From the sequence record MW812339.1: DNA of 64,000 nucleotides. One strand, given 5' to 3'. The notes under the pieces are model-generated. The model worked only from the letters and a program-made list of their open reading frames with translations. It had not been told where the DNA came from and did not search any database. Of this stretch, positions 34,385 to 56,109 are shown piece after piece (positions within the stretch are counted from its first letter, which is position 1; every line of letters begins with the position of its first letter). A program made the translations under genes and the position numbers.

Positions 34385-34452
34385 AGGCGAATTCCTCTAA
34401 AGGTACAGGTCATAGTATGAACTCGACGACCCTCGGAGAAAAGGAGTATAAA

Positions 34453-37400: not shown

Positions 37401-38169
37401 AGAATCGATTATGGCAGGCTGGCACGACGACACGAACTTCTTCAACCGTCTTTCTATTATCCTGAACCGCGGCTATAACATCACTGACACAAACGGTGAT
37501 TTCTGTTATGCCGGTTTTGCGTTGAACTACGGTCGCGGACGTAACGTGGTGATTGGTTTTACCGGAACGAAACTGCCTGTGGGTGGTGGCGCTGCCTGGT
37601 CTGCCCTGAATCCACGCGTGTACTGGTATCAATCGCGCAATGCGACAGGCATCACCATTACTGGTTACCTGATCCTTGGCGGCCTGTATTACGACTTCAC
37701 GTTAACCCTCAGCACAACAGAAATGACCTTAAAGGTCACGACGCGCGCGACCGGTGACGTACAGACGGTTGATTTGTCGAGTCGTATCCGTCCGGACTAC
37801 ATCGATATTCGTCCGCTCATCAACAATCCAGAGTTGCCTATTTATCATGGCTTCGGTGGGATGTTTGGCGACGTGACAACGGTGGCTCCGACGTATAGCC
37901 GCGATGCCAGCATGGTCAAGAATAGGTATTACGCCACGTTCTTAGATTACATGATTAACTACTCCGCTCTCAACCGCGTTCGGTTTGCAGAGTACAATTG
38001 GGTGGGTGGTTCTGTCACCCCTGAATCGTTGGCTGACTCTATTGTCAATGCCATCGGTTCAGAAGGTGCTTTGGTCGACCCAAACAAAGTACCGCTGTAT
38101 GCCAACGCCGACAACGTGATTGCGTTCAATCGCGGAGGCATTGCTCGCGCGGTGATTATTCGCGATTAA
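34453..38169 (+). CDS. Large tail-fibre-like virion protein 1
   Basis: About 1240 aa; start after AAGGAG; DNPH, KTSYGLDQVQDIPDTQLLIS, GHSH motifs shared with neighbours. Confidence 0.75.
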   Translation: MAVVPDPHFNQPGNKQTGEAVTPIGTKYRMLFPVHAPFFTTSLVVKSGGKTLKLGDDYVITHPYMVGMSRTGYLTHGAVWITNDKYTNNFTMDYHAVGIAEATASQIAAEREANKDKYPTAIECQWDAVVGDVYFPPVDIQFDWENWRGELELMQAIAAIGTKIGQLPPIPDPYIGNRFAPAFPADIMMSGSRQYVNYDNQGGYVAKNNGQAIVYLSSNDYLLFNFKVDTEYNLSSYASNVNAKQFWSMPLGYLGTSSGVQNVGISWDSTSLVMRFAITIAGVEYPVASFPAPKSFMAKFRVRFDRNYDLDTLRCVVTGADGSTKIDTVFDFRNPPSNLVAIFAQYNVLKAVHRGVDFRNSWYVVRGDTWKHNVFPGMAVPDGSDVLTLLKHYHSIVDALYRNAPAHAHIPRVDNPHRDIWGAIRALEQGGIASDATLVYGKNQSQLADYVNTQLPKLADLANKLLRMPAAPQAINGTFGTKPGLTSVTSAVGTDESNGVGAQFTVDAKVIRFLGRDSTTVNAGNNAITFQSGANQLILYPDSRGLLFNGKKLLDPTTVAPYLPGNEGGGDGLFYGTSTATVTINGNGIQSVPFICQFVPPTSDDLGLLVMRKLATDFGTAEDLAATPALIAKLDAMFTGKLVKAKSYVNDLPLTGSIYLDKTSYGLDQVQDIPDTQLLISTLQQAELDKYAVVGHSHQASAFGIDTATDVQFGLVKYSLAVDDATLALDGGEVIRQTTSVTEIEGVAKSLDSGAAIDIIRFGPPGTGTIEGGATFTGWMLTIKAGTYFVGQEYTVPLTTINLTEAFPGAYEDVEMGIYVDVQDNAAVYRIFANKDTAETDTMTAVGIVGTSEDEIVMAEVHSVTRLGDFRELEEHIADDNAHIKRTMTQAEFGFTYGTGGPVWRSGIMDNTRGEGDWRGALADGYYPMGAVQYDDANGRWTFRPNGTSVNDYRFIHNLFPMYLNQGVTANWLSSDTGNASMLESIMAGWHDDTNFFNRLSIILNRGYNITDTNGDFCYAGFALNYGRGRNVVIGFTGTKLPVGGGAAWSALNPRVYWYQSRNATGITITGYLILGGLYYDFTLTLSTTEMTLKVTTRATGDVQTVDLSSRIRPDYIDIRPLINNPELPIYHGFGGMFGDVTTVAPTYSRDASMVKNRYYATFLDYMINYSALNRVRFAEYNWVGGSVTPESLADSIVNAIGSEGALVDPNKVPLYANADNVIAFNRGGIARAVIIRD

Positions 38170-41100: not shown

Positions 41101-42363
41101 ATTCGCATTACCAGTGACCTGAAAGTCTATTACGGCTACATCAACAACATCTCGAACACGACACCGGGCTTCACTTTTGGTGTTCCAACGCAGACGTTCA
41201 AAGAGTTGGTAGTCACACCAACTGTACTCTCTGATACGACACTTCCTACGGGCGATGCGCTGGACTTTGTGGACTTGGGTACCAACGGGAAACCGGGATT
41301 CCTGAGCACCCGTTGGGCGGTTCGCTATCGTTACAACTGCAACACTCGCGTACTGCGTCTTTCTATTATCTCCAGCAAAATCGGGACTAATACTCTACGG
41401 GCTCTGGAGGTGGAAATTCCATTCGCGATTGACCTGTTGGACTACTTCGCCGGTTTCGGTATGGCGGTCCATATGGGTGCAGTTGATGCCAACGAACGTA
41501 TCCGCGTGAGTCATGCACTGATGAACCCAGGTGGCGCTGTCGACGTTGACAAGTACCAATACCTGCGTTCGTTGTTGGAGTCGTACACTGACTGGTCAAT
41601 GGAAACCGAGCGTACTGGGTTTGAGAGTTATGTTGCGACTTCGGCATTGCCGAATGCCAGCGGCGATAATCTCGATTACCCGGTAACGGAATGGGTTGCT
41701 TTGCCGGTAGGTCAGGACGGGAATGCGGAATTATCTCACCGTGGACAGTTGCCATTACCGTTCCACTCCGCGTTAGCTGAACGTGGAACGTTGATTGCTA
41801 AGCAGTCTACGTTGCCCGCAGGCTACCAGTGGAACGGTGCGTGGGATAGCACCAAGATGAAGCGACGTTCGATTTGGCGTGATGGACTAATCCTCTGTTA
41901 TCGCCAGGATAAGAATGCCCCGATTGCCATTAAAGAAATCAGCGGCACGATTACCTCGAACTACCCAGGGTTGATTATCATCGGTTCTAACGCAGTGACG
42001 GCCAATAACCGCACCACGTTCCTGGCGGCAACGTCAGCGACGGATGCGAAGACTGTTAATCTGCAACCGACGAACCTCAAACCTGGCCAATCTGTCTTCA
42101 TCGCGTTGAATGCTCCGGATGCGATTGGGGCAACTGGGCTGAACGTTAAGTTCAATCTGGTGCTCAAAGACCATGCCGGGACAGTAGTGAAAACATTAAC
42201 CGAAGCCGACGCTGGTTGGGAATTGCGCTCTAACGGTGGTATCCATCTGATGGAGAAACGCACCCCATTCCACATCACTTCGGCGGCCTGGCAATGGCTG
42301 TCGTCTGAGTTAGTACGGGAACGTACCAATGATGGCAACGGCGTGGGTGAGTGGGCCTCTTAG
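38182..42363 (+). CDS. Large tail-fibre-like virion protein 2
   Basis: 1393 aa; YPYDPRGINP start, KNPH, KADLGLANANNTADVDKPLS, GHHH motifs. Confidence 0.8.
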   Translation: MKTYPYDPRGINPECHFTEERIIESDDPKDRVVMLDHRPFFDSLVVTLAGSSIPLTRGTDYELEYALTPLDDSVASAVFCGVHLINPKLRGAVIFDGQMLGGTFYDGLIEMLDELVKALNNPTSADWLLLDNRPALYPATPSATSWADMLNKKYIASAVHDVELDSDAANDAIREKLTELKVQVTSLATEMDAFNFPAHTGAKNPHNTTVAQTNAHPVNLKTPDTFLAYGKNLRQLTSEIRALGLQQSDIDKYISKWVSKDSKGVFNATISGTRAMFRSPNGESDITFATDSFVMKSNGSIVLATGYVPGDTTTRFMEWKAGTNTLRIESSGTVLGMDKLTLNGTTLLTTTALMQYQQDPNQGSGGQTDPDDNKLYIQGQNGISFSGKGSKADPVTGTVTPSKATTTTVGVVKLKKGPGPETTGVASTPDSLTQYEGDLSSYVLKATLLNNKAMDDGSRTMTKADLGLANANNTADVDKPLSDDLSEAVTGLSAKGHHHDWSELQIPDASQTTQGIARYSNNQAGLAAGRGVTPNVLKALSDRLDVVAAALANAKDGTVTDFAAVKNSSWTVSAAKTSLSVTDLKYFFLSNNERKDGSVSGSIDLQTTPMFQWFSQDNRMEDSWNAAVVNTGAGVVWDNIGRPAPFAFQGSQIGVNATQMGDLSVVSVLAKVRVHSVSDKLSIYVAGGGRITVYVDGQQVTSGTSPLFVDVPMTTGWDEHCVAIKAECNDSTKAAALMFDIYDDIYPLYSSGTHTKVALLQEFVTTPKNLRHYLYVNMRTDALYSRAEPILEPSQMNVERGYIGYVDVPATGLTAGATITFDTTFDFGPAKEISAHVDVRKAHGVKSSDWKLSDNLKMLPLNKVKASMQQWGFAQAGSGASGGHVYRPDRGLSDYYFSSTGTTTIETLTVFGNKQASPYCWFTPYNPKENGQPTFEGSFTIDVENPTPMVDKGRVWGLMLLAKANGTTAPHRQIRITSDLKVYYGYINNISNTTPGFTFGVPTQTFKELVVTPTVLSDTTLPTGDALDFVDLGTNGKPGFLSTRWAVRYRYNCNTRVLRLSIISSKIGTNTLRALEVEIPFAIDLLDYFAGFGMAVHMGAVDANERIRVSHALMNPGGAVDVDKYQYLRSLLESYTDWSMETERTGFESYVATSALPNASGDNLDYPVTEWVALPVGQDGNAELSHRGQLPLPFHSALAERGTLIAKQSTLPAGYQWNGAWDSTKMKRRSIWRDGLILCYRQDKNAPIAIKEISGTITSNYPGLIIIGSNAVTANNRTTFLAATSATDAKTVNLQPTNLKPGQSVFIALNAPDAIGATGLNVKFNLVLKDHAGTVVKTLTEADAGWELRSNGGIHLMEKRTPFHITSAAWQWLSSELVRERTNDGNGVGEWAS

Positions 42364-42441: not shown

Positions 42442-42460
42442 CTGATTAGGAGTGTTTGCA

Positions 42461-45400
42461 ATGCCGAGAGAAGACGCGGCGCAGTTTAACGGGAAACTAA
42501 GTACCGCCACCTACCCAAACAAATACTCAACGGTGATTCCCGTTGAGGCACCCTTTTACCGTATCGGTTTAACCTTAACCGTTACTGACCCTGTAACCAA
42601 AGTTAAACGTAAGCTGATTGAGGGCCTGGATTATTTCCTCGCTTTCTACTTTAAGGAATTAGCCGAAGCCGAAGATGACCAAATCTACGGCGGGATTATG
42701 TTGCTGAATGCCACTGATATCGAGTACGAGCTGCTCGCGGTAGGTCGTCAGTATCGCATCCCGGCTTCCGAAATCGGCAAGTATTTGGTGAAGACCGACA
42801 ACAAAGACCCGCGGAACGTTGACTGGTCAGAGTTGATGAAGTACCCGCCTATCATTGCGCCTATCGATCCGCCGAAAGATTTAGAAGAAGCGATTCTGCG
42901 TGATGAAATCGTTAAAGCATTGGATGATATCCGTCAGGGTATTGTTGCGCGCGCGGGTGAACTCGATGAAGCCTTTACCGAAGTTACCAATCTTATTTTT
43001 GAGAACGGTAAGCGAGTCTTCGATGAAGAGATGTATCAGCACCACCTCATCAAAAACGCCCACAACTACACCTGTGCCGATATCGGTGCATTGCCGGTAC
43101 TGGGCAAAGCGGTAGATGCAACGAAGGCATTCGGCCGTACACTGGCTGAGCTGGTGAACCTGATGTCATCCAGCGGCATTCAACAGCAGCATATCGACAC
43201 ATTGTTGGATAATACGCTGGGCGACCTACTGGGCCGGATGCGTGTTCTGAATAATGATGCTATCACTTTCCAGACATCAGTTGGCCACGTCATCACGATG
43301 AAAGGTGAGAAGTTCATCATTACTTCTCCAAAACCACTGACCCTGAAAGCCGACCAGGATAATAATGAACCTGGCCTGGCCACGGAATTCGGTGCAGGCT
43401 TAAACACCCTGTATGTCCACTCCGGTAAGAAAGGGGACAAGTGGGGCGATTATGGGATGGAAGTTTTAGCGCCAGTGTTCAATGGCGTGTTCCTGGTAAC
43501 GCCGGATATGGTCGGGTTGTATTTGACTTCGGTGAAACTGCTTCCAGCCAACGCCTATTTCAAGTCCAGCGACACTCTGAAGATTTACGGTTCAGGGAAA
43601 GAGACCAACAAAGTCTACATGAACGCGGAGTTGCCTGGTGCGACCACCGCAGTAGAAGGTCTGCTGGCCATTACCAACCTGTCCGCATCGGTAGCATCGT
43701 CCACTGCCATTTCGCAGAAAGCAGTTACCGATTTAAAGAACCTGCTCGACAACTACGTCGACGATTCCTACACCATCAACGGAAAACGTTTCGTTGCTGA
43801 CGGTAATGGGAATATGGTTCTGACTTTAACGAAGACCGATTTTGGCATCGATAAGATGGACAATACGGCTCCGTTAGCCAAGCCGGTGACAAAGGCCCTG
43901 AGTACAGTATTAGCCGGAAAGGCCCTGAGTGACCACACGCACACCATCGGCGACCTTGATAACGTACCGTATGGCTCAACCTCTGTTACGGGCCTGGTGA
44001 AGCTCTGGGACGTCCTGGACACCACGAATGATAAACTGGCCACAGCACGCTTAGGTTTTGTGCTAGACCAGAAAATCGACGTGCTAAGCGACAAGATTAA
44101 TACGCTGTTGCCCGCATGGACAGTTGGTGGTGCTTCTTACGGTAATGATAGCTTCCTGCCGATTCCCGCACTGGGTAATTACGAAGGCTACACTAAGAAC
44201 CAGACTTACCAGAAAGGGATGGTGCGTTACCAAAATGGTAAACTCTATTCTCTGCGTAACGGTTCGAACGGCGTGCCTCCAGGCGACTGGGGTATCTACT
44301 ACGCGTATATGGACGTGGCGTCTGATGCTACGCTCAGCAATGTACAGCAGACGTCGGTACGCTATCACCCAGCGGGAATGAGTAAGTTCCCTGGCGTAAA
44401 ATTGCAGGCCATCCTTATCACCGGTCGTGATGCGATCGTGTGTTTAGGCGACGACGGTAAACGTTATCTGGTGTTGTTCAACGGCACTATTGACCACGCA
44501 AAACACACGCAGGTCTGTGAGGTCACGGTTCCCGATTATCAGAACGGTAACGGCACCGCGGTCACCACCAATCCATTCGCACCAACGCCAGAAATGGACG
44601 ATTTGGTCATCAGCGGTTCTAACGTGTATCTGCTGCGTAACACGTTCAATAACTCGTCCTACTATGTTGCGGCGTGGTCTCTGCGTATTGCGGATGTGGC
44701 GAGTAATACCGCGGTGGCTTTTAACCGGGTGACGTTGAATGGTGAAGGTGGGATGTCGGGTGATAACCTGATTATCCGTAATGGTCAAAAAACAGATGCG
44801 ACTCAGACAGGTCAGTTCTTCTCGGCTATCAATGCGGCAGGGATTGTGAAGTGGAATAACGCGCGAAACTTTGTACATGGGCCAGAAGCCTCACACATGG
44901 TGTTTGCGAAGGAAGGGGTGATTCGTGTTAACCACGTTGCGACGGTTTGGTTTGCTTCCTCAACGGGTGCAACCATTAACTTCCAACTGTGGCAAACCAG
45001 TTACCTGTTAGATACCACCACGAACAAAGTCACCCTGGAATGTCCTACCCGTTTCCCAATCACGGCTGACGACGTCAGCGTTAAATACGCCGACGGTTCG
45101 GCCATCGGGGAAGCGAGTGCGAAGTGGGGTGGTGGCTCGGCGAACCGGAGAACGTACGGTGCGGTGATGGAAGACTTCGTCATCTCGCAGACGAATAACG
45201 GTGATCCTGATCTGATGCCGGAAATCTACATCGCTTCGGCGAAAGGTGCAGACCCGTTCGACTTCTTGCGCTATGATTACAAAGTGAATAACACCTACGC
45301 AGGCATCACACTTAACCAAGGACGTGGTTCGGTCTACGAAAGTGGACTTAACTTCCCGTTGTCGTTGGGTGGGAACTCCCCGCTGTTGTGGTTGTCTAGC

Positions 45401-47629
45401 CCACGTGGGCGTTTAGCGATTGAAGTCGAAGTTGACCCGAACGGCACGTATGGCGTACCGGGCTATGGTGGTTTCGGTCCGACCAACAACCGACGCGTTG
45501 TCGATTCCGGTGTTTACGAACAACTGAGTCAGATGGCAATGATTATCACGCCTACCCAAAGCGGCGGGGTATTGAACGGTTGGCAGTCGACAGGCCCTGA
45601 AACTTTCCCGTACAAGAACGTTGCTAATACCTTCTCCATTGCGACTGACCGCTACACGCTGTCTACGACCGACTGGAACAAGATGAAGCAGATGATTATC
45701 GATAACGCGCCAACTGGTGCGGCTAACGGCTACGCGTCTGAATATATCTTGGCGGCTAACAACGCAGGTAAAGCGCTGTTCTCGCTGTGGTTCCTTGGTA
45801 TCGGTACTCCGCAGCAGCTCTGTATCGCACAGGTTGCCTGTACTAAAGTAGTGAACAACGCAAACATTCTCGATATTTATTACTTCGTGATGCAGCCAAC
45901 GTTCACCGCCACCAACGTGACGTTCCCAAGCGTGAGTCTGTTACTGCTGGATTTCTTCAATAACCTGGACTATGGTCTCGACCATGCCTCGCTTGGGGAA
46001 ATCACCGGCGGGAAAACGAAACGCGTAGGCCAACCGTTGCTCGTGACCAATGACGGTATCAACTTTGGCCTGTCCTTGCCGTACACGTTGACCATTCGTC
46101 AGATCGGTGACTTGGGTGCCTTGAACTACATGGCGTCCTTGAAGTTGTCTTCTGGTACATGGTCGAAAGTGGCGGGTAAATCCGCAGTACGTAGAATGGC
46201 ACCAGCCCACCACCCAGAAAGTCCGGTCTATATCGGTCAGACAAAACAGGTGGTTAAAGTCTTTGTGAAGGCTGATGCTGTATTCTGCTCGGGGGAAGCC
46301 TATTCGACAGCGTCGTTCGTTACAGATCCAGCAATGCCCGCAGCCGGTACTCCCGTTATCTTGGCTGGGGTTCAAACGGCAGAGGGTTGGATTCTGTATC
46401 TGACCGAACAGGTAGGTCTGGACTTCGGTTCTTCTAAGTACACGGTCCCTACGTGGGAAGCCGATTTAGAAGCCATGTTCCCAGACAATCACGCCAACCA
46501 AACTTTCTATCTCCACGCACGTGTAGACAACGACACACCGTCTTACGTCCTGGATACCACGCAGCATCCTGACTCGGCGAACGAATTGTTCGTGGGGGTT
46601 GTGAAGACTGACAGTAATCGCATCGTTGAGATTAACGTCGATCGTGTTAAGCGCCTGGGTAATGTGAAACAGGTACTGGAGCACGCCGCGGTTGCGTATC
46701 GTCACGATATGGATGTGGCGCGAGATAGCAAGCTTGGTACGCTGGCACCTCTCCGCAAAGAGGCAATCGGCGCACTTAACGGTTCTGGTGATGGTTATCT
46801 GGACAGTCAGCAAACCTATGGCGTGGTAATGGCGCAAAAGCGTCCGAAGAAAAATGTGTCCTACCGCTTTTCCGATTTGGCGAAGATGAAGTTCTCAGAT
46901 TTCTCGAACGTGGCGGAACGCTTCTGGATACAGTCCCCGAAAGTAACGACGGTGTTGCCTGCAGAACACGCGGCGGCGGCTGCTCGAAACATGTCGTGGA
47001 TTGGCGCGAATGCGGGGGGTGTGGACTCGGCTGGAGGCTATCAGGCGATGACCCGTGTACGCTTCACGGTACCGGGTACGGATGACGGGTCGACGAAGAT
47101 GGTTTATCTGGCGATTGGCGTACCGAAATCGACCATTGAGTTCATGTACAGCCTGACCACCGATGACGATTCGACGCTCACGACCTTCAGCCCGAGCGAT
47201 GATTCGTTGTTCCAGATGAGCACCGCGTTACCGTCAGGTAAACCCGCAGTGCTGACTATCCTCACTACGTTCGAAGACGCCGTGTATTCAGCGATGTTGA
47301 ATAAATTCATCACCTTCGAATTGCGTGCGGATGACCAAAACGGTGCGTTGTTGCGTAGCAGTGATGCCAACTGTCCGTTCCAGATATTCAATGTCATGGA
47401 AACGACCCTGGGCTCCGGCTTCGTGACCAGAGCGATCGAACGTTCTTTCGGGAACTCTACGTTGCTGCTGAACAAAACGGTGACCACGGGGCAGGATGCG
47501 TTCCAACCGCCTACACAGGGCCTGAAATCAGGAAGCACCTTTACCCTCACAGTCGCAACGGAATATGGCAGTGAACACGGTATCGTGGAGCTGGATGACC
47601 TGCAGGTCAATCTTATGTTCCGTACCTAA
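42461..47629 (+). CDS. Large tail-fibre-like virion protein 3
   Basis: About 1720 aa; ATG 42461 spaced from AGGAG; KNAH, KTDFGIDKMDNTAPLAKPVT, DHTH motifs. Confidence 0.8.
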   Translation: MPREDAAQFNGKLSTATYPNKYSTVIPVEAPFYRIGLTLTVTDPVTKVKRKLIEGLDYFLAFYFKELAEAEDDQIYGGIMLLNATDIEYELLAVGRQYRIPASEIGKYLVKTDNKDPRNVDWSELMKYPPIIAPIDPPKDLEEAILRDEIVKALDDIRQGIVARAGELDEAFTEVTNLIFENGKRVFDEEMYQHHLIKNAHNYTCADIGALPVLGKAVDATKAFGRTLAELVNLMSSSGIQQQHIDTLLDNTLGDLLGRMRVLNNDAITFQTSVGHVITMKGEKFIITSPKPLTLKADQDNNEPGLATEFGAGLNTLYVHSGKKGDKWGDYGMEVLAPVFNGVFLVTPDMVGLYLTSVKLLPANAYFKSSDTLKIYGSGKETNKVYMNAELPGATTAVEGLLAITNLSASVASSTAISQKAVTDLKNLLDNYVDDSYTINGKRFVADGNGNMVLTLTKTDFGIDKMDNTAPLAKPVTKALSTVLAGKALSDHTHTIGDLDNVPYGSTSVTGLVKLWDVLDTTNDKLATARLGFVLDQKIDVLSDKINTLLPAWTVGGASYGNDSFLPIPALGNYEGYTKNQTYQKGMVRYQNGKLYSLRNGSNGVPPGDWGIYYAYMDVASDATLSNVQQTSVRYHPAGMSKFPGVKLQAILITGRDAIVCLGDDGKRYLVLFNGTIDHAKHTQVCEVTVPDYQNGNGTAVTTNPFAPTPEMDDLVISGSNVYLLRNTFNNSSYYVAAWSLRIADVASNTAVAFNRVTLNGEGGMSGDNLIIRNGQKTDATQTGQFFSAINAAGIVKWNNARNFVHGPEASHMVFAKEGVIRVNHVATVWFASSTGATINFQLWQTSYLLDTTTNKVTLECPTRFPITADDVSVKYADGSAIGEASAKWGGGSANRRTYGAVMEDFVISQTNNGDPDLMPEIYIASAKGADPFDFLRYDYKVNNTYAGITLNQGRGSVYESGLNFPLSLGGNSPLLWLSSPRGRLAIEVEVDPNGTYGVPGYGGFGPTNNRRVVDSGVYEQLSQMAMIITPTQSGGVLNGWQSTGPETFPYKNVANTFSIATDRYTLSTTDWNKMKQMIIDNAPTGAANGYASEYILAANNAGKALFSLWFLGIGTPQQLCIAQVACTKVVNNANILDIYYFVMQPTFTATNVTFPSVSLLLLDFFNNLDYGLDHASLGEITGGKTKRVGQPLLVTNDGINFGLSLPYTLTIRQIGDLGALNYMASLKLSSGTWSKVAGKSAVRRMAPAHHPESPVYIGQTKQVVKVFVKADAVFCSGEAYSTASFVTDPAMPAAGTPVILAGVQTAEGWILYLTEQVGLDFGSSKYTVPTWEADLEAMFPDNHANQTFYLHARVDNDTPSYVLDTTQHPDSANELFVGVVKTDSNRIVEINVDRVKRLGNVKQVLEHAAVAYRHDMDVARDSKLGTLAPLRKEAIGALNGSGDGYLDSQQTYGVVMAQKRPKKNVSYRFSDLAKMKFSDFSNVAERFWIQSPKVTTVLPAEHAAAAARNMSWIGANAGGVDSAGGYQAMTRVRFTVPGTDDGSTKMVYLAIGVPKSTIEFMYSLTTDDDSTLTTFSPSDDSLFQMSTALPSGKPAVLTILTTFEDAVYSAMLNKFITFELRADDQNGALLRSSDANCPFQIFNVMETTLGSGFVTRAIERSFGNSTLLLNKTVTTGQDAFQPPTQGLKSGSTFTLTVATEYGSEHGIVELDDLQVNLMFRT

Positions 47630-47676
47630 CACATAGCGCTATGGGGCACGGAAGCCCCAATCTAAGGAGTTTGGCG

Positions 47677-48879
47677 ATGGCCGAAATTACTATTCAGTAC
47701 CCGTTAGACCTAACCGGTACACTGACGTCGAACGCCGTAACCCGGCGTGTCACGTTGGGGTCAGGTAAGGTTAACCGGGCATTTGCTTTCCCTGTCGGAG
47801 CGTTCTACGCGGATACCTTCCGCTTAGCAGCTTCGAATAAGCCGGGCGTCTATCCGTATAAACGCGGTGTCGACTACGAGCTTATCCTTGCGCACACTGC
47901 GTACCAGAAGATGACGAAGAACCGTGAAGTGGTAATGGGGGTCGTGGTAACGAACTCTGCCATCCCAACGGATATTGAAGTCTTTGCGCAGATTGTTGGT
48001 GGTCCACAGGCGGCAAACGTCGAAGGTATCCGTCAGCTGATTGCGTCACTGAAAATTGAAGACCGCACCGTCGACTTCAAAGATTTGCGCAATGTGCCGG
48101 ATACGTTCCCTGCGGCCCCGACCTATAAAGACCTTGGTGACATTTACGGTTTTGAATACATCATTACCGTGCTCTCCGGGATTATGGATGCCATCAACTC
48201 TGGCTCAGCGGTACAACTGGAACAGATTAAAGGTATCCTCGACGGATTGAAGAATGACTTCATGTCTGCCCTGAATGCGCACATCAATGCCGAAGGCAAC
48301 GTGCACAATCTGGACATTCATCAGGCCAACGGTTTAACCGAAACCGAAATCCGTGCGCTGATTCAAGGTGTACAGACTGCCATTGATGCCACGATTACGG
48401 ACATCAATAATCTGAAAGCAGCAGACACTGCTATAAATGGACGTATCGATGCGATTGTGGCCTCTTTGGCCGCGTGGAACGATCAGCTGAACTCGGTCGC
48501 GCAGAACTATCAGAAAGCGATGTTGGCTCTGGCTAACCTGAACTCTCTGGTGCTGCAGCTGCAGAAGCAAGTCAACGACATGCAATCTGCGCTTAACGAA
48601 ACGAACCAGCGCGTCGATGACCTGGAGAATCAGGGCAAAGACTTCCAACAGCAAATTGATGCCCTGAACACGCGAGTGACTAACTTGCAGACGCAGGTCA
48701 CGAACAACACCAATGCGATTTCCCAGGCGAACCAGAATTTGGCGAACCACGTCGCTGCGGATAACCCGCACCCGAACTATCTGCACAAGCGGTATGGTGG
48801 GGTGGTTCAGGCCGCTGTCCACGTCAACGCATCGCTCACGACGCGTGACGACGTACAGGCAGAAGCCGGTACTAAGTAA
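47677..48879 (+). CDS. Virion fibre-like protein with trimeric coiled coil
   Basis: YPLDLTG N-terminus shared with the family, about 100-aa Asn/Gln heptad coiled coil, C-terminal HVAADNPHPNYL...YGG fibre motif; start after AAGGAG. Confidence 0.75.
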   Translation: MAEITIQYPLDLTGTLTSNAVTRRVTLGSGKVNRAFAFPVGAFYADTFRLAASNKPGVYPYKRGVDYELILAHTAYQKMTKNREVVMGVVVTNSAIPTDIEVFAQIVGGPQAANVEGIRQLIASLKIEDRTVDFKDLRNVPDTFPAAPTYKDLGDIYGFEYIITVLSGIMDAINSGSAVQLEQIKGILDGLKNDFMSALNAHINAEGNVHNLDIHQANGLTETEIRALIQGVQTAIDATITDINNLKAADTAINGRIDAIVASLAAWNDQLNSVAQNYQKAMLALANLNSLVLQLQKQVNDMQSALNETNQRVDDLENQGKDFQQQIDALNTRVTNLQTQVTNNTNAISQANQNLANHVAADNPHPNYLHKRYGGVVQAAVHVNASLTTRDDVQAEAGTK

Positions 48880-48886
48880 TTTATTT

Positions 48887-48936
48887 ACGAGGAGAGTCAT
48901 GTTTATGGAACATGACTCCTCTCGTTCTTATTTTTT
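48887..48936 (+). promoter_or_regulatory. Long hairpin plus T-tract directly before first Cys-rich peptide gene
   Basis: ACGAGGAGAGTCATGTT-TATGG-AACATGACTCCTCTCGT then TCTTATTTTTT. Confidence 0.6.
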
Positions 48937-48947
48937 AAGGAAGCGTA

Positions 48948-49340
48948 ATGGCGATTTCTATCAAAGATATTCGTAACCGCTTGCAAGTCGTAGAAGCAAA
49001 TGTGGCAACGGGCCCACGTGTCGACGCTCAAGTCGCCACTAAAGCCTATAACGCCGCAGATAAATTTGCAGGATGGACGCCAGCGCAGCTCGATTGTGGA
49101 GGCACCTGTTCGTGGACATGTTCTAATGGCTGCTCGCACGGCTGTTCGAGCTGTTCCGGTTCCTGTTCGTCTTCTTGTATCGGTAGCTGTTCATCGACTT
49201 GTGGTGGTAACTGTTCTGGTTGCTCTGGTTGCTCCGGTGGGTGCAGTTCTTCGTGCACGGGTAACTGTTCCGGCGGCTGCGGTGGTTCCTGTTCATCTAA
49301 CTGCTCAGGGGCTTGCTCCGGCGGCTGCTCTGGACGCTAG
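48948..49340 (+). CDS. CXXX-repeat precursor-like peptide A (49-aa leader plus 81-aa core with 21 Cys)
   Basis: Core CGGT-CSWT-CSNG-CSHG-CSS-...-CSGR; AAGGAAG RBS; beside radical SAM genes. Confidence 0.85.
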   Translation: MAISIKDIRNRLQVVEANVATGPRVDAQVATKAYNAADKFAGWTPAQLDCGGTCSWTCSNGCSHGCSSCSGSCSSSCIGSCSSTCGGNCSGCSGCSGGCSSSCTGNCSGGCGGSCSSNCSGACSGGCSGR

Positions 49341-49349
49341 GGGGAATAA

Positions 49350-49751
49350 ATGGCAATTGGATTAAAAGAACTCAACTCCAGATTGGTTGCGGTAGACCAG
49401 GTTGCGTTCAAAACAACAACTGCGGTTCAAGCCTACATTCGGCCTAAGGCAACCAACAACTCTGATTTGTTTGGCGGTCAACCGCGTGCTCACTACGACT
49501 GCGGCGGGACGTGTTCGTTTAGCTGCTCAAGTTGTTCTGGGGGTTGTACGGGGTCAGCATCAGGCGGGTGTGGTTCAACGTGTTCAGCGAACTGCGTCTC
49601 TGGCTGTTCAACAGGCTGCTCAGGTTGTAGTTCGACGTGTTCTGGTGGTTGCTCAGGTGGTTGCTCAGGTAACTGCTCTAGTGGCTGCGGTGGGTCTTGC
49701 TCTTCCAACTGTTCTGGTTCGTGTTCAGGCGGATGCTCCGGCCCTATGTAA
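49350..49751 (+). CDS. CXXX-repeat precursor-like peptide B (50-aa leader plus 83-aa core with 20 Cys)
   Basis: Core CGGT-CSFS-CSS-CSGG-CTGS-ASGG-...-CSGPM; leader homologous to A. Confidence 0.85.
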   Translation: MAIGLKELNSRLVAVDQVAFKTTTAVQAYIRPKATNNSDLFGGQPRAHYDCGGTCSFSCSSCSGGCTGSASGGCGSTCSANCVSGCSTGCSGCSSTCSGGCSGGCSGNCSSGCGGSCSSNCSGSCSGGCSGPM

Positions 49752-49763
49752 TGGAGGTTACTC

Positions 49764-49970
49764 ATGATCAGTCTCAAAAACATTCGAGACCGTCTTGTTG
49801 CCGCCGAGAAGTACACTACTACTGCACAAGCAAATAGTTATATTGCTAACCAGGGGACGGTGTCTACCACTAACAACCTGGCGTCTTTACCTTTGTCCCA
49901 CTATAACTGTAACGGTGGGTGTAGTTGGTCGTGTAGCGGTAGCTGTAGTCACGGTGCAGGCAATCGATAA
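49764..49970 (+). CDS. Short CXXX precursor-like peptide C (48-aa leader plus 4 Cys)
   Basis: Core CNGG-CSWS-CSGS-CSHG-AGNR; GGAGG RBS; leader homologous to A and B. Confidence 0.8.
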   Translation: MISLKNIRDRLVAAEKYTTTAQANSYIANQGTVSTTNNLASLPLSHYNCNGGCSWSCSGSCSHGAGNR

Positions 49971-49997
49971 CGACGCATTAAAAGTTTGGAGTATGAA

Positions 49998-50885
49998 ATG
50001 AAGAACGATTTGCATCTTGCGTACAAAACCACTTTCAACCACCCACTTCATCTGTCTTCACCTGACTCAGTTCGAGCACACCTCGCAGACCAGGTTCGTC
50101 TTATTGCACAGATTCCCGGCGAGTGGCCGAAAGTGCGCGGGCGTTTTCTGACTAACCCGAATAACTACACTGTTGAAAATACGTTTAAGATCCGTGATAT
50201 GGAAGCCCACAACATCACTATCTTTAACGGTGACGGTAATTCGCGTGGCGTGTTGGTCGGCGGGAAATATTTCTTCAGTGAAGGGATTCTGAACAACAGT
50301 GTCGATTTGGAACTGATGTTCACTCCGTTTGATGAACTGGACTGTAAGCCGGTGGCTCGTCGTTGGTGGAGTCCGGACTACCTCGGGTCCTTCCCTTACT
50401 ACTTCGCGTTGGTCCCTGTTGAAACAGAAAATTATTTCGACACTGAGCCGTACATCGAAATCGAAGGGTATAAAGACCTGGACATTAACTGCTTAGCGGA
50501 CATGATGGCGTACAGCTACAAGTTCGTGTGGGATAAACGTCGCTCCGTCTGGTATGCATTAACTGACGCGCACGAAATCACCAAGCGTATCCGTAAACCG
50601 TGGATGCAGCATTTGGTGCAGACGCGTCACGGCGATTACCCGGCAACTGAAGCCGACTTAAGTAAGCTGGTAAGTTTCCTGCTGACGAAAGTTGAGCTGT
50701 CCGACGAAGAAGCGGAAGCAGTGTCCGAAATCCGTGCCCGTGCGGTGACTCTGGAAGACTTGAAACGTCTGAACGAACGTCAGTACGATTTGAATAAAAT
50801 TCTGGCTGCCTATCACTCGCCTATGCTGCTTGTGCCGGGGGCTAACGTAAACGACGATCCTTTATTCGCTATTGATTATATTTAA
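49998..50885 (+). CDS. Hypothetical protein within radical SAM cluster
   Basis: ATG at 49998 (MKNDLHL) spaced from GGAG; no recognised motif. Confidence 0.8.
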   Translation: MKNDLHLAYKTTFNHPLHLSSPDSVRAHLADQVRLIAQIPGEWPKVRGRFLTNPNNYTVENTFKIRDMEAHNITIFNGDGNSRGVLVGGKYFFSEGILNNSVDLELMFTPFDELDCKPVARRWWSPDYLGSFPYYFALVPVETENYFDTEPYIEIEGYKDLDINCLADMMAYSYKFVWDKRRSVWYALTDAHEITKRIRKPWMQHLVQTRHGDYPATEADLSKLVSFLLTKVELSDEEAEAVSEIRARAVTLEDLKRLNERQYDLNKILAAYHSPMLLVPGANVNDDPLFAIDYI

Positions 50886-50905
50886 AAATACTGGAGCAAC
50901 CTGCA

Positions 50906-51823
50906 ATGACAGACAAAGTAGAATCCAGGATCTCGTCTGAACTGTATGATAATCCGACAATCCTGTCGGTTGTCACAACTTCTAAGTGTAACTTAGATTG
51001 TAGCTTCTGTGGAGGAGCCTATTACATGGATCGCGAGGATACTTCTCGTGAATTTCAACGTAGCCAGATTATGGAGCAGTTAGAACAGAATCCTGGCATT
51101 CAAGAAATTCACTGGACGGGCGGTGAGCCTTTACTGGCACAGCGTAAAATCGAAGATTTCTTTTTCGAGCTTAAAGAAACCCACCCGCACCTCAAGCATC
51201 AGATGTACACCAACGGCTTAAAGATGCGTAAGTCGCACTTGCCGATGCTGAAACAGTTCGACGTAATTTTCGTGTCTATCGACGGCTACAAAAAGTCTGA
51301 ACGTCCGTTCATGAACTTTATTGACGGCGGTAACCACGAAGCGTTGGAAACGCTGTATGAGCTGGACAACTATTACAGTTGGGGTGTCATGACCCGTGAC
51401 CAGCTTGGTGACAAGCGTTGGTACGAGGACTTCATCGAGTTGCATCGTGCGCTGTATCACTACCGCCCAGGCGGGGTGTCGCTGCTGTTTGATGCGATGA
51501 TGCCTAAACCGCTCTCGCCAGACCACGTCATGAACTTTATGTATGGATACTGGAAGATTCTGGATAATATCGAACGCCTGAATATGCAGAATGGCACGGA
51601 GTGTGGCTTGGCTATCAGCAAAATGTTTGATACCGAGTGTAACATCTGCAGCGAAGTGTTGTGGCTAAACGCCGACGGCGCTATCGAGCAAAACCAAAAT
51701 GCTCCTGAGATTGTGAGTGTGGGTTGTAACCGTCTGGCTCGTTCTATCGGGGTAGAAGCGTACAACTACATCAATCGTGTCATTTCTGCTAAACGTCATC
51801 GGGCGGCTAATAATGAGCAATAA
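50906..51823 (+). CDS. Radical SAM protein with short C-terminal Cys segment
   Basis: CNLDCSFC (CX3CX2C), WTGGEPLL, YTNG, VSIDG; C-terminal CNIC and two further Cys. Confidence 0.9.
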   Translation: MTDKVESRISSELYDNPTILSVVTTSKCNLDCSFCGGAYYMDREDTSREFQRSQIMEQLEQNPGIQEIHWTGGEPLLAQRKIEDFFFELKETHPHLKHQMYTNGLKMRKSHLPMLKQFDVIFVSIDGYKKSERPFMNFIDGGNHEALETLYELDNYYSWGVMTRDQLGDKRWYEDFIELHRALYHYRPGGVSLLFDAMMPKPLSPDHVMNFMYGYWKILDNIERLNMQNGTECGLAISKMFDTECNICSEVLWLNADGAIEQNQNAPEIVSVGCNRLARSIGVEAYNYINRVISAKRHRAANNEQ

Positions 51824-53141
51824 TCAACCAATACAGTACACCCCACGTACCTATCAGGTCGTGACCAACCTGTCGTGCAACCTCGACTGCGAATATTGCT
51901 ACGAGCGTAAATACCCACGTAACAACAAAGCGGCGGATGTTATCGACTTTATCCATGCGTGTTTCGAGCGTGATAAAGATATCGAAAACGTGGAAGTCAT
52001 CATCGACATCATCGGTGGTGAGCCGTTCATGCAGCCGAAGCTGCTGATTGCCGCTTTCGAAACGGCGGAAGAGTTGTGTAAGATTCACAACCGTCCGTAT
52101 ATGTTCAGTATCTCGACTAACGGTACGCTGTTAGACCGTGCGCTGAACAAAGAAATCGTTGAGCGTTGGAAAGACAAACTGTCTATCGGCGTATCCATCG
52201 ATGGCCTGCCGGAAGTTCACGACAAATACCGCATCTTTACCACCACCCGTGAAGGCTCTTACGAGCAAGCGGTTCGTGGCTACAATTACCTGAAAGAAGT
52301 GGGTATTGCTGAACTGGGCGTGAAAGCAACCTTTACCATCGACACGCTGCCGCACTACGCCGCAAGTATGAAGTCGCTGATTGACATGTCTGGCGGTGGT
52401 ACCATCTCTGGTAACGTGACGTACGAAGACGTCCTGCCGCGTTCTATGGCGCTGGACATTGCTGCGCAGATGATGGACGTGATGGACTACTGGGTTGAGA
52501 AAGGCCTCCACACCAACCCACGTAACATCATTACCCACATCATTCCAGACGGCCTGGATTTCATGGAAATCTGGAACCCGGACTGGCGTGACAAACTGCT
52601 GCACGATGACACGGTGCGTTTGAACCCAGACCGCCTGCGTCCTTATTGCGGCACGTTAACTCACATGACCTGCCTGGGCTTCGACCGTAAGATTTACGGT
52701 TGTAACCGCTTCATGTCAACGGTAACGTCGCGCTCTGCGGTGTCTGAATTGGTTGGTCGCGAGTTCGTTAGTCTGGACGGCGGTGCACTGCTGGAAGAAA
52801 TCCAGACCCAGTACACCAACTACCCGGAAACCTGCCTGGGCTGCCCAATGAAACACAGTTGTGGTAGCTGCGCCGCTGCTTCTTACGAGAACGGCGAAGG
52901 GACACTGGAAGACCGTAAAGCGTATCACGCTGAACGTCGTCAGTGTGGCTGGACCACCGCGAAGCTGATGGCCGCGGAATATTGGTTCCAGAAAATGGGC
53001 AGTACCAAAGGCTCTGACTTCCACGATAAGTCAGTCTGTTATTGTGCTCGCTGCGTACGTCAACGCAAAGAAGCAAATATATTACAACAATCCGGAGTTC
53101 AGAATGAAGTCAATACTGATTCACAATTTTACGAAGCGTAA
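51813..53141 (+). CDS. Radical SAM/SPASM peptide maturase, CXXX-repeat target-like (TIGR04115-like)
   Basis: CNLDCEYC, IIGGEPF, ISTNGTLL, SIDGLPEVHDKYR; SPASM region YCG..C..IYGCNRF and CLGCPMKHSCGSC (CX2CX5CX2C), then QCGW..AEYWF; start MSNNQP at 51813. Confidence 0.88.
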   Translation: MSNNQPIQYTPRTYQVVTNLSCNLDCEYCYERKYPRNNKAADVIDFIHACFERDKDIENVEVIIDIIGGEPFMQPKLLIAAFETAEELCKIHNRPYMFSISTNGTLLDRALNKEIVERWKDKLSIGVSIDGLPEVHDKYRIFTTTREGSYEQAVRGYNYLKEVGIAELGVKATFTIDTLPHYAASMKSLIDMSGGGTISGNVTYEDVLPRSMALDIAAQMMDVMDYWVEKGLHTNPRNIITHIIPDGLDFMEIWNPDWRDKLLHDDTVRLNPDRLRPYCGTLTHMTCLGFDRKIYGCNRFMSTVTSRSAVSELVGREFVSLDGGALLEEIQTQYTNYPETCLGCPMKHSCGSCAAASYENGEGTLEDRKAYHAERRQCGWTTAKLMAAEYWFQKMGSTKGSDFHDKSVCYCARCVRQRKEANILQQSGVQNEVNTDSQFYEA

Positions 53142-53670
53142 GATGCATTTGGTTGACCGTTTCTTGCGTAAGAAGAAACTGTTCAACGTGCACGCTATCG
53201 TGTCCGGTGAAGACTTCACGGACGAGATTCACAGCCTGCTGATTAAGTACGGCTTGAATGTTATCATCCCTGTCAACTGTGTTGAGAAGGGACATGAATC
53301 AGTAGCGGAAATCGAGAAGCGCAACCCTGGCTTCGAAGCCCGTGTGTTGGCGTATCCGCGCCACAAAATCGAACTGCTTCGCCGTTCAGATATGGAAGGC
53401 AGTCCGGAGAGTATTATTGCGTTGGGGATGTCCTTCCCACGGTTGCGTATTCGTAACCTACGTAATACCACCCCGGTAGATTCCTACTACGCGGAACGTC
53501 AAATCTTCGAAGAACATCTGCTACCGCAGCTGGAACAAGAAGAGCAACACGACATTTCCGTACTGTGGGGTGACGACCTCGATCAGAGCTTCCAAATGCT
53601 GGACTTCGGTTTACTATTTGAACTTGGCCTGATTGAGGAGGACGAATGTCTACTGCTGGCAAAAGCCTAA
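53104..53670 (+). CDS. Hypothetical protein within radical SAM cluster
   Basis: ATG at 53104 after GGAG, overlapping SPASM gene end. Confidence 0.7.
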   Translation: MKSILIHNFTKRKMHLVDRFLRKKKLFNVHAIVSGEDFTDEIHSLLIKYGLNVIIPVNCVEKGHESVAEIEKRNPGFEARVLAYPRHKIELLRRSDMEGSPESIIALGMSFPRLRIRNLRNTTPVDSYYAERQIFEEHLLPQLEQEEQHDISVLWGDDLDQSFQMLDFGLLFELGLIEEDECLLLAKA

Positions 53671-54317
53671 CGAACGACGAAATTCGCGCACGTTACTTCC
53701 AACGCGATTTGCCGATTGACCGCCATGGTAATTTCATGGAACGTATTGGTGCACAAGACCAGGGCCGGACAGGCTTCTGTGCTCTGCTCCATTACCACCT
53801 GATTGAAGGGCTGTCCGACAAAGCGGCGTTAGAACGCATGAAGGCGTATGAGATGTCTACCATCGAAGCCAACTTCACGCTGAAACGTGCGAAAGAGTTT
53901 ATCTCTGACGTGCTGGAAATTGACCTGGACACGATGCGTACCAACATCAAGTCGACAGCGCGTTACATCTACGATGACGTGCAGAAGATGTTGTTGGAGG
54001 TGGATCGTCGTTACGAGAATGATCGTCATGCGTATATCGAATACGATGGCCATCACTATCAAGCCGATGAAGCATCACGCACCGCGCTCGGCCAGTACAT
54101 CCAGGCGAATCACGCCCCGGACTACTGGTTAGATACCCTTAACACGCAAATCGCACCGTTCTCAATTGAGCAGTGCCAGGCGTTGTTAGCGGCTATCATG
54201 AAGCGTGACCAGGACATGCACACAACGCTCGCTGAAACGAAACGTAAGATTCGTGTTCTGGCAGAGGCTCGCGACTTTACAGGCCTGAAAGCGTTGCAAG
54301 AAGAACTGGGCATGTAA
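53646..54317 (+). CDS. DUF4376 domain protein (tail-fibre-associated) with unknown N-terminal domain
   Basis: IEYDGHHYQADEASR...WLDTLNT...EQCQALLAAI...Q...KRKI pattern. Confidence 0.7.
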   Translation: MSTAGKSLTNDEIRARYFQRDLPIDRHGNFMERIGAQDQGRTGFCALLHYHLIEGLSDKAALERMKAYEMSTIEANFTLKRAKEFISDVLEIDLDTMRTNIKSTARYIYDDVQKMLLEVDRRYENDRHAYIEYDGHHYQADEASRTALGQYIQANHAPDYWLDTLNTQIAPFSIEQCQALLAAIMKRDQDMHTTLAETKRKIRVLAEARDFTGLKALQEELGM

Positions 54318-54321
54318 GCAC

Positions 54322-54373
54322 GAAAAATAAGAAAGTACCTCTCTACCCTAGGGTAGAGAGGCCTTTATTTTTT
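54322..54373. terminator. Bidirectional intrinsic terminator closing the radical SAM operon
   Basis: Perfect palindrome CCTCTCTACCCTAGGGTAGAGAGG (54338..54361) with A/T tracts. Confidence 0.85.
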
Positions 54374-54890
54374 AACTGAACCCATTCAGCTCGCCGTTTT
54401 TCCACTGGAGGTTATCTTTACCAGAGTAAACGCGCCACACATAGGCACCCGTCCATTTCAAATGGTTAGGGTTAATTTTCAGTTTGATATCACGGAACGG
54501 ACCGTCACCCACATCGGGCTGCATTTCGCCACGCGTGACTAACGCTTCTGCTGCATCGAGTTTGTAATTCGGCAACATCATGTTAATCAGATTCAGTACG
54601 TAGGCGTCGTCGTCCCAATGTACTTGAGCGTCGGTGGTTGCCGTTGAGTAGACGTCCTCACCTGGCGGGTTCGTGAAGCTGAAGCGGGTGAAATGGTACT
54701 CTTTCGTCCCTTTGAAGTTCGGGCTATCGTCTTTAGCAATCAACGTTAACGAACTATTGCGAGTATCACCTTCTCCGGTCGGTGTGTAAGGCGTCGGTTT
54801 GCCAACCACAACATCGCTCAGTGCCAAGTTCAAATCAGGATTCTTGGCATTTACCATGTCGATAAATACTTCTTGTAACGTCTTTGCCAT
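54372..54890 (-). CDS. Virion protein, GELxGF family paralog 1
   Basis: DTRNSSLTL...FKGTKEYHFTR; ends NGELNGFS. Confidence 0.75.
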   Translation of the reverse strand: MAKTLQEVFIDMVNAKNPDLNLALSDVVVGKPTPYTPTGEGDTRNSSLTLIAKDDSPNFKGTKEYHFTRFSFTNPPGEDVYSTATTDAQVHWDDDAYVLNLINMMLPNYKLDAAEALVTRGEMQPDVGDGPFRDIKLKINPNHLKWTGAYVWRVYSGKDNLQWKNGELNGFS

Positions 54891-54933: not shown

Positions 54934-55446
54934 TCACTTGAAACCATTGAGTTCACCTTGAGTGCCAGACAAGTCAACTTTTAAGGGCAGGATGGTAAAT
55001 TCCCACATCCCTGTTTCTGTCTCCGGAGGAATATACTTAATGTGATTCATGCGTACGGAAACAATCAAGCTACCATTCTCTCCGGCCCGACGTTCAATCT
55101 CGAAGTCCTCGAGAACGAAATATTCACCATTGGCATACTTCTCATCCAACATGCCGTTGATGCTCGCCACGACGTGCCCGTCCATTTGCCAGTCATCTAC
55201 ACCATCACCGTCTATGATTCTACTCGTAATCCCTGTCGGGAGTCGGTTATAATAGATAGACGTCGAGCCAACGAAATAAATGGATTCTTCTTTGGCGGTG
55301 ATATACGTGGTGGTGTTAAATTGTTCTGACGGCCCACCCTGCATTGGGTTGTTGTAGATTTCAACATCATCCAAGGTTGCCGGGTGTGCCAGACTGGGGT
55401 TAGCTGCGTTGTACAAATCAAGCAGCTGTTGGGCGTAATTGATCAT
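54934..55446 (-). CDS. Virion protein, GELxGF family paralog 2
   Basis: FNTTTYITAK...FVGSTSIYYNRL; ends QGELNGFK. Confidence 0.75.
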   Translation of the reverse strand: MINYAQQLLDLYNAANPSLAHPATLDDVEIYNNPMQGGPSEQFNTTTYITAKEESIYFVGSTSIYYNRLPTGITSRIIDGDGVDDWQMDGHVVASINGMLDEKYANGEYFVLEDFEIERRAGENGSLIVSVRMNHIKYIPPETETGMWEFTILPLKVDLSGTQGELNGFK

Positions 55447-55578: not shown

Positions 55579-56109
55579 TTACTGGATAGTAAAGCCGTCC
55601 AGCTCGCCATTAGTGGTGCTCAGGTCGGTCTTAGTGACTTCCTGCTTAATGGTGTATTGCGCCAGGGAGTTACCGAGGAACTTGATGTGGCCATCTTTGA
55701 TAGCAACAGCAATGATCTTATCGGTACCTGTGCCGTCGGAACGTGTGATTGTCAGGTCGCTCAGCGCGAACTCGTCGTCCGGATGGGTAACCTGGAAATC
55801 AGCGTTTACTTTGGCCAGCACTTCGGAATCTTCATCCCAGTCAGCCTGGTCCGCAGTAATCGTTTTGTCACCGATACCGTCTGCAACGTCCAGACGGATA
55901 TAATGGAGTTCCTTCTCGCCGATGAAGTTTGCAGACTCCGCTGCAGCGGTGATGATGAGTTTGGTGTTACGGGTATCACCGCCATCGGCAGGGGTATACG
56001 CAGAGACGGCACCGAAGGTGACATCAGCGACTACCAGAGCGTTAGGCACTGAACCATTTACAGCATTAAACAAGGCAACAAGTTGCGCTTGGGCGGAAGT
56101 AACGGCCAT
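55579..56109 (-). CDS. Virion protein, GELxGF family paralog 3
   Basis: DTRNTKLII...FIGEKELHYIRL; ends NGELDGFTIQ. Confidence 0.75.
   Translation of the reverse strand: MAVTSAQAQLVALFNAVNGSVPNALVVADVTFGAVSAYTPADGGDTRNTKLIITAAAESANFIGEKELHYIRLDVADGIGDKTITADQADWDEDSEVLAKVNADFQVTHPDDEFALSDLTITRSDGTGTDKIIAVAIKDGHIKFLGNSLAQYTIKQEVTKTDLSTTNGELDGFTIQ

Follow-up and report, generated by a model that had tools for sequence, protein, structure and literature searches.

The window analysed here is a 64,000-nt stretch of sequence record MW812339.1 from Erwinia phage pEa_SNUABM_29, a SPN3US-like jumbo phage of the genus Seoulvirus. SPN3US serves as the genetic model for phiKZ-like giant phages, and over bases 47600-54400 the window is ~79-84% identical to SPN3US and its relatives. 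Our subject is a gene cassette in this region, which encodes three small proteins with Cys-rich cores (genes A, B and C) and, further downstream, two radical S-adenosylmethionine (SAM) enzymes. The cassette lies in a co-oriented run on the plus strand that comprises, in order, three fibre paralogues, a coiled-coil protein of 412 amino acids (aa) in its longer version, A, B, C, a 295-aa protein, the two radical-SAM enzymes, a 188-aa protein and a DUF4376 protein.

Gene A (48948-49340) encodes a protein of 130 aa, which consists of an N-terminal part, or leader, of 49 aa (48948-49094) and a CXXX core of 81 aa with 21 Cys (49095-49337). Gene B (49350-49751) encodes 133 aa and has the same layout, with an N-terminal part of 50 aa (49350-49499) and a CXXX core with 20 Cys. 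Gene C (49764-49970) encodes only 68 aa, namely an N-terminal part of 48 aa (49764-49907) and a short core with 4 Cys. All three lie on the plus strand, each is preceded by a purine-rich, Shine-Dalgarno-like stretch, and all match phrog_6085 (A, E 5e-42; B, E 2e-42; C, E 8e-24).

SPN3US, Machina, CR5, Wellington, Derbicus and several metagenomic jumbo-phage contigs all carry the triad, with its order and sizes unchanged. It is kept in at least six genera and also occurs in two distant contigs, L019 and L020. In the plus frame the ratio of nonsynonymous to synonymous differences per site (pN/pS) is 0.03-0.54, in leader and core alike, with pS at 0.6-0.95, that is, near saturation. By gene, the ratio is 0.08-0.32 for A, 0.15-0.54 for B and 0.03-0.29 for C, and in six of eight pairwise comparisons the constraint on the core equals or exceeds that on the N-terminal part. 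A, B and C are therefore real genes under purifying selection, and this selection together with the conserved triad rules out that they are not genes or that they reflect a low-complexity artefact.

The public records annotate other reading frames at these sites. In MW812339, antisense coding sequences are annotated over A (49046-49258, minus strand) and B (49493-49765, minus strand), while in the SPN3US records an out-of-frame gp166 is annotated over B (L001, 10819-11154) and nothing over A or C. Because of these spurious open reading frames (ORFs), proteome searches against such annotations are blind to the true genes. The corrected A, B and C of SPN3US lie at 10343-10735, 10746-11150 and 11166-11372 of L001, and their N-terminal parts have Lys/Arg sites. 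Gene callers seldom call the true ORFs, which explains why the leader of B, searched against 5.8 billion predicted proteins, returned a single protein.

The A and B cores have a nearly constant number of Cys. Among the 14 cores counted, the length is 80-92 residues and the number of Cys is 20-23; Ser makes up 30% of the residues, Gly 26% and Cys 25%, the Cys are spaced as CX2C and CX3C, and 240 of the 278 Cys-Cys gaps (86%) are exactly three residues long. The more distant cores hold 21 Cys each in L019, and 25 and 29 in L020. In the latter contig (1554-2546) A and B are longer and share a short non-repeat end with Asp, His and Glu, a feature seen in no other core. The 14 counted cores are free of both Asp and Glu, which serve as acceptors for PapB, and Gln is almost nil; acceptor residues of a known type are missing. 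The cross-link chemistry is unreadable from homology. With the 18-residue repeat model TIGR04114, A falls just short of the cut-off (18.7 against 20 bits) and C gives no match. C-type proteins are present in all relatives, with 2-4 Cys.

The leaders, in turn, share a common pattern. In an alignment of 18 leaders, columns 3, 5, 8, 12 and 15 are hydrophobic in all 18, and the N-terminal part of ~49 aa ends at an invariant Cys-x-Gly-x-Cys-Ser junction that is followed by Trp in 16 sequences and by Phe in two. The phage N-terminal parts show no signal features. Columns that all three paralogues have in common are what one expects of a shared recognition element, and this is why we read the N-terminal part as a handle. 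The amphipathic start of each leader, which the first-pass annotation had described as a heptad, is thus real; the amphipathic span covers only about two heptads (columns 3-15).

The large radical-SAM/SPASM protein (442 aa; 51813-53141, plus strand) is homologous to SPN3US gp163 and is the likely maturase of A, B and C. Among NCBIfam families it scores best for TIGR04115, the maturase of CXXX-repeat targets (118.8 bits; cut-off 350), and next for PapB (111.6 bits), and its nearest solved structure is the thioether-forming enzyme CteB (5WGG, E 6e-11). The alignment begins at query residue 33 and CteB residue 106, the cluster motif starting at residue 22 of 442; a match that begins at CteB residue 106 implies that the phage enzyme is without the N-terminal RRE domain. 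The three residues of the CX3CX2C motif (22, 26 and 29) are Cys in all seven aligned enzymes, including a bona fide TIGR04115 member, and the same seven enzymes keep the SPASM cysteines 279, 297, 341, 344, 350, 353 and 378. The large enzymes of the jumbo phages carry an extra C-terminal CxCxxC (residues 409, 411 and 414), which is absent from gut-phage and classical maturases and may be an additional metal site.

The small radical-SAM protein (305 aa; 50906-51823, plus strand) is homologous to SPN3US gp164 and gives generic radical-SAM matches only (PF04055, E 1.4e-14; phrog_1802). The 188-aa protein (53104-53670, plus strand; start uncertain, GenBank 53143) is homologous to SPN3US gp162 and matches phrog_7988 (E 3e-82), with no match in Pfam, NCBIfam or PDB. 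Its homologues lie directly 3' of the large radical-SAM gene in L019 and L020 as well, and the gene is always so placed.

Across 65 records of SPN3US-like phages the gene order of the cassette is fixed. The conserved core set consists of A, B, C, both radical-SAM enzymes and the 188-aa protein, and its order differs in the distant contigs. In L019 (1-10165; Logan SRR33330815, a 27-kb contig) the large radical-SAM gene comes first, followed by the 188-aa homologue and then A, B and C; the contig also holds the small radical-SAM gene and a weak homologue of the 295-aa protein. Two Peptidase_S74 fibre genes precede this cassette, and a protein with a fibre-type N-terminal domain follows it. L020 has no 295-aa or DUF4376 gene.

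The nearest family of the cassette is the CXXX-repeat system, which comprises TIGR04114/TIGR04117 targets, a TIGR04115 maturase and a TIGR04119 second maturase, and which was defined in silico. No biochemical paper on the CXXX-repeat/TIGR04115 system was found in the literature searched. The phage cassette shares with it tandem Cys-x-x-x repeats in which Gly, Ser and Thr are frequent, and an adjacent SPASM radical-SAM enzyme with a 3 + 7 cysteine pattern. Two comparison loci from a phage tblastn search help to place the cassette. The first, on an unrelated gut-phage contig (L016, 4415-8299; MT835573.1), shows an intermediate form of the CXXX system: a protein of 193 aa has an N-terminal part of 108 aa without Cys, and its remaining 85 aa are a CXXX tail that attains the TIGR04114 cut-off. 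A radical-SAM enzyme nearby scores 300.6 bits for TIGR04115, just under the cut-off of 350. The genes for this pair belong to a block of structural genes and come immediately after that for a 358-aa protein, which we read as fibre-like (no family match). The jumbo-phage leader has no similarity to the N-terminal part of the gut-phage CXXX protein.

The second locus (L017, 2222-4919; MT837480.1) is a textbook CXXX system: the target, which carries a Tat-like signal, contains 29 CX3C units, and it is accompanied by a maturase that scores 630 bits for TIGR04115 and a second one that scores 235 bits for TIGR04119. The record, of 6.8 kb, is filed as 'Bacteriophage sp.' and shows no phage genes; it may be bacterial DNA filed as phage. 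The repeats open with Cys-Asn-Gly-Ser-Cys in both this classical target and the phage cores. In contrast, the classical target has a Tat-type signal where the phage proteins have a 49-aa amphipathic N-terminal part, and the place of the TIGR04119 partner is taken in the phage by the small radical-SAM enzyme and the 188-aa protein. BLASTP finds no similarity between the small radical-SAM protein and the TIGR04119 protein of this locus (E 0.24), and TIGR04119 is not among the best 25 families of either radical-SAM protein and is listed for none of the other cassette proteins. Three fixed paralogue types, the location among tail genes and the extra CxCxxC on the large enzyme further set the phage cassette apart. 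The TIGR04115 scores of 118.8, 300.6 and 630 bits for the three loci form a continuum. Judged by these sequence comparisons, the jumbo-phage cassette is a divergent, phage-borne branch of the CXXX-repeat system, while by the curated cut-offs it is a non-member.

We regard it as probable, by a modest measure, that A, B and C are the substrates of this divergent phage CXXX-repeat radical-SAM maturation system, with the N-terminal part as its handle. A, B and C would then be three paralogous substrates of one phage-borne maturation branch, recognized alike through the ~49-aa N-terminal part and the Cys-x-Gly-x-Cys-Ser-Trp/Phe junction. The large SPASM enzyme would form the machinery together with the small radical-SAM protein and the 188-aa protein, which is always linked; the large enzyme most likely puts many thioether cross-links along the CXXX repeats. 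Such cross-linking would make of ~80 flexible Gly/Ser/Cys residues a stiff rod of set length that resists proteases. The products would probably be expressed late, be made together with the tail-fibre genes and act with the fibre apparatus.

Several observations weigh against this interpretation. The large enzyme stays far under the TIGR04115 cut-off (118.8 against 350 bits) and is missing the RRE domain, which is the substrate binder of CteB; a TIGR04119-type second maturase is not found in the cassette. On the substrate side, B does not match the TIGR04114 repeat model, and the cores have neither Asp/Glu nor the Crp-type C-X-X-Q/D motif. As to gene context, a kept terminator-like hairpin stands between the fibre genes and gene A, and there is no fibre gene inside the 7-kb contig of L020.

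The Crp system of Methanococcus voltae offers a precedent. In this archaeon CrpC, a SPASM radical-SAM enzyme (TIGR04463), introduces ranthionine thioethers into CrpA, a Cys-rich protein of 28.8 kDa, and CrpA and its paralogue CrpB have their first 47 residues in common (PMC13692751). As in the phage, the substrate is protein-sized, repeat-rich and full of Cys, paralogues share an N-terminal part of ~47 aa, and no protease or exporter is known. The two systems also differ: CrpC has an RRE domain whereas the phage enzyme is without one, the Crp repeats hold C-X-X-Q/D whereas the phage cores have no Asp/Glu and almost no Gln, the host is an archaeon and not a phage, and the large phage enzyme scores 57.8 bits for TIGR04463 against a cut-off of 525. 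With PapB and CteB (5WGG, 5WHY) the phage enzyme shares a homologous radical-SAM core, the SPASM domain and Cys-rich substrates, but it scores under the equivalog cut-offs, lacks an N-terminal RRE domain and has no Asp/Glu acceptors in its presumed substrates. The A and B substrates, with at least 20 Cys each, also differ from SCIFF peptides, a family that is named after six.

The Crp comparison also bears on a different role for A, B and C, in which they would act outside the virion as helpers, either by binding metal or iron-sulfur clusters as metallothioneins do, or as a scaffold or chaperone in fibre or baseplate assembly. The CrpA operon has been tentatively tied to metal handling (PMC13692751), cores with 25% Cys in CX2C and CX3C spacing would suit a metal ligand, and relatives have a gene for a tail assembly chaperone nearby. 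We consider such a role very improbable, as two dedicated radical-SAM enzymes accompany the triad in every relative, which is hard to square with plain metal binding.

The leaders invite another explanation. The first-pass annotation held that they resemble segments of the neighbouring tail fibres, and that they might be trimerisation or docking stalks retained on the mature protein. In a full version of this proposal, the N-terminal parts would derive from fibres and anchor A, B and C, possibly in a 1:1:1 heterotrimer, on the 412-aa protein or on the fibres themselves; we consider this unlikely. That A, B and C would in this way show cross-linked or metal-loaded Cys-rich tips seems to us doubtful to a like degree.

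The fibre strings on which the claimed resemblance was built do occur at their sites, namely at residue 219 of fibre 3 (nt 43106), residue 222 of fibre 2 and residue 445 of fibre 1. The resemblance itself is no better than chance in any of the comparisons made (shuffles, hidden Markov model (HMM), profile-profile, PHROGs and Pfam). In Smith-Waterman alignments of each leader with each fibre and with the 412-aa protein, the scores lie inside the shuffle distribution; the best of the 12 comparisons (p ~0.04) falls elsewhere in fibre 2, and the proposed pairings are never the top local alignment. An HMM of 18 leaders, run against all six-frame ORFs of the window, recovers only A, B and C, with fibre 2 at E 8.6 and fibre 3 unlisted. 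Profile-profile alignment of the leaders with the fibre motif region is non-significant (hhalign probability 0.33%, E 0.18), an outcome that the first-pass annotation had itself named as refuting its proposal. When searched alone, the leaders match no PHROGs family except their own, phrog_6085, and no Pfam family at E up to 10. In so far as sequence comparison can tell, the leader handle is no detectable derivative of fibre sequence.

A wider search with a three-leader profile against 1.84 billion representative proteins returned 18 proteins. Sixteen are small proteins or fragments with the same leader, which is mostly N-terminal, and the other two are long repeat proteins that are matched via a ~14-residue repeat present 7-15 times. 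One of these two ends in a Peptidase_S74 chaperone domain, typical of fibres, and its repeat aligns with leader positions 20-34 over 15 columns (hhalign probability 52%, P 1.4e-4). This match was picked post hoc from ~1.8 billion proteins, and the segment is not the one named in the first-pass annotation; we treat it as a lead and not as homology. As a weak motif match it speaks for retained stalks of fibre origin, against which stand the absence of significant similarity to the phage's own fibres or to any fibre family and the shortness of the amphipathic stretch. Two heptads are short for an autonomous coiled coil.

Gene context is more favourable to a function at the tail, and the picture of retained stalks now depends on it instead of on sequence resemblance. 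The run is headed by three giant fibre/baseplate paralogues (34417-38169, 38182-42363 and 42452-47629, all on the plus strand), and A, B and C do follow the fibre genes, as had been pointed out. Between them lies the gene for a coiled-coil virion protein of 400 aa (47677-48879, plus strand, GenBank start 47677), the homologue of SPN3US gp167; a longer version of this ORF, of 412 aa and starting at 47641, was the query in our searches. It matches phrog_2163 (E 2e-102), is 87% identical to SPN3US gp167, has coiled-coil-type matches at residues ~190-370 and shares its N-terminal domain with the fibre paralogues. In the SPN3US virion, for which 86 proteins are tabulated, gp167-173 are included and gp161-166 are not; gp167 is a non-head virion protein, for which 25 unique peptides give a coverage of 70% (PMC5694885, Supplementary Table 1). 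All of gp167-170 are non-head virion proteins, of which gp168 is shown as a tail protein (PMC5105663, PMC5694885). A, B and C themselves lie outside the annotation that was searched, gp166 being out of frame, and SPN3US virion proteomics was thus unable to detect them. The gp167-170 genes (phiKZ gp131-like paralogue family C) are neighbours of the cassette and co-oriented with it, but their products have no significant sequence or profile similarity to the leaders.

Full-length versions of the 412-aa protein are confined to the cassette-bearing clade, while other phiKZ-like phages have the N-terminal domain only. That the full-length protein ends just past its coiled coil and is limited to this clade speaks for retained stalks; the co-occurrence is a single-clade observation and one phylogenetic event. 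Further points in favour of such stalks are that the cassette lies beside fibre genes in three phage lineages, that three orthologous types are kept everywhere, as expected of three needed chains, and that a near-constant Cys count and a constrained core fit a structural element of set length. The gut-phage homologue, with its N-terminal part of 108 aa, points in the same direction. On the other side, the cassette enzymes and the DUF4376 protein are non-virion in SPN3US, and L020 has no nearby fibre gene.

One close relative shows that a C-type protein can carry a further domain. In a 222-kb contig (L008, 10001-10633; ENA ERZ2916498) the C-type protein has 210 aa, with the usual N-terminal part and Cys motif and an in-frame, strand-rich C-terminal domain of 145 aa, and it occupies the normal cassette position. 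Neither Pfam nor a phage tblastn search gave a match for the added domain, the libraries searched contain no homologue of it, and its single-sequence AlphaFold model is unusable, with a predicted local distance difference test score (pLDDT) of 31.9. A C-type protein extended at its C-terminus speaks for retained stalks, and for a modified small protein over a released peptide, but this long form comes from one contig only.

The layout of leader and core, with several precursor paralogues adjoining radical-SAM enzymes, is that of a classical peptide made on the ribosome and modified after translation (RiPP). In such a pathway a host protease, or an unrecognized phage protease, would cut the leaders, and the cross-linked cores would diffuse after lysis, an outcome that we think quite improbable. 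That the released peptides would be antibacterial, act in signalling or anti-defence, or bind metal appears improbable to the same extent. Scans of the cassette proteins with Pfam, NCBIfam and PHROGs recognized no peptidase or transporter families, and no immunity gene was recognized either; the want of a peptidase or exporter would suit proteins that keep their leaders on the virion, although the 295-aa and 188-aa proteins could include a peptidase. In many bioactive RiPP families, cores vary more than leaders, whereas the cores of A, B and C are no more variable than their leaders. C-type cores are down to 2 Cys and yet retained, and the classical CXXX target of L017 is a Tat-signal protein and not a leader-cleaved peptide. 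More compatible with a released product are the L020 cassette, which is away from fibre genes, and the two hairpins that bracket the genes, one before A and a terminator after the DUF4376 gene, which suggest a separate transcription unit.

The first of these hairpins, followed by a U-rich run, lies between the 412-aa gene and A (48887-48936, plus strand) and looks terminator-like or mRNA-stabilizing. It has a folding energy of -24.1 kcal/mol (z -5.2), and a hairpin whose stem sequence differs occurs at the equivalent place in four further genera (SPN3US, Machina, CR5 and Wellington). The element may serve as a terminator, stabilize the mRNA or belong to a promoter region. In all five genera the loop has UAUG (L001, 10272-10345; L003, 2553-2624; L004, 2583-2644; L005, 2620-2689). 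The second, a bidirectional terminator-like hairpin (54338-54361), marks the end of the gene run, which closes with the DUF4376 gene as the first-pass annotation had stated. Rfam and tRNA scans of the whole window were empty.

The gene context gives modest support to a small protein that is modified by radical-SAM chemistry, retains its N-terminus and acts at the tail fibres, and it favours, to some extent, a fibre-linked modified small protein over a cleaved, secreted peptide. The more specific idea that cross-linked Cys-rich proteins are parts of the tail-fibre apparatus in SPN3US-like jumbo phages and in at least two other phage lineages, with A, B and C joined by their N-terminal parts, strikes us as rather improbable. 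If A, B and C were virion parts, they would represent an enzymatic, post-translational cross-linking route in the building of phage particles, and they would give CXXX-repeat proteins a biological role. We know of no described case in which an enzymatic cross-linking route of this kind is used in phage particle construction. Even if the products are non-virion, the corrected gene models and the conserved core set provide a clear, testable system.

Two further proteins of the run belong to the cassette less firmly. The DUF4376 protein (223 aa; 53646-54317, plus strand; PF14301, E 5e-8) is the last in the run and is homologous to SPN3US gp161. It had been taken as a sign of fibre association, a use that we reject here, given that gp161 is outside the 86 SPN3US virion proteins and the gene is absent from the L019 and L020 cassettes. 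The DUF4376 gene is peripheral and outside the conserved core.

The 295-aa protein (49998-50885, plus strand), a homologue of SPN3US gp165 that matches phrog_8030, has 41 relatives, all on phage-like contigs. Its AlphaFold2 model (pLDDT 86.8; predicted template modelling score (pTM) 0.82) combines a curved sheet with a helical bundle. The model has no PDB neighbour (best E 0.54) and finds only its own orthologue in BFVD, and a profile search against PDB sequences was empty; the predicted structure is apparently a new fold.

Beyond the terminator-like hairpin lies an array of ~170-aa paralogues on the minus strand (54372-54890, 54934-55446 and 55579-56109), with neighbours to ~57393; similarly placed ORFs of related contigs contain DUF7941. 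By position and size, the members of this array may be the counterparts of SPN3US gp160, which belongs to paralogue family B and is abundant in the head. The SPN3US virion paper names the family B member gp161 in its text and gp160 in its table (PMC5694885).

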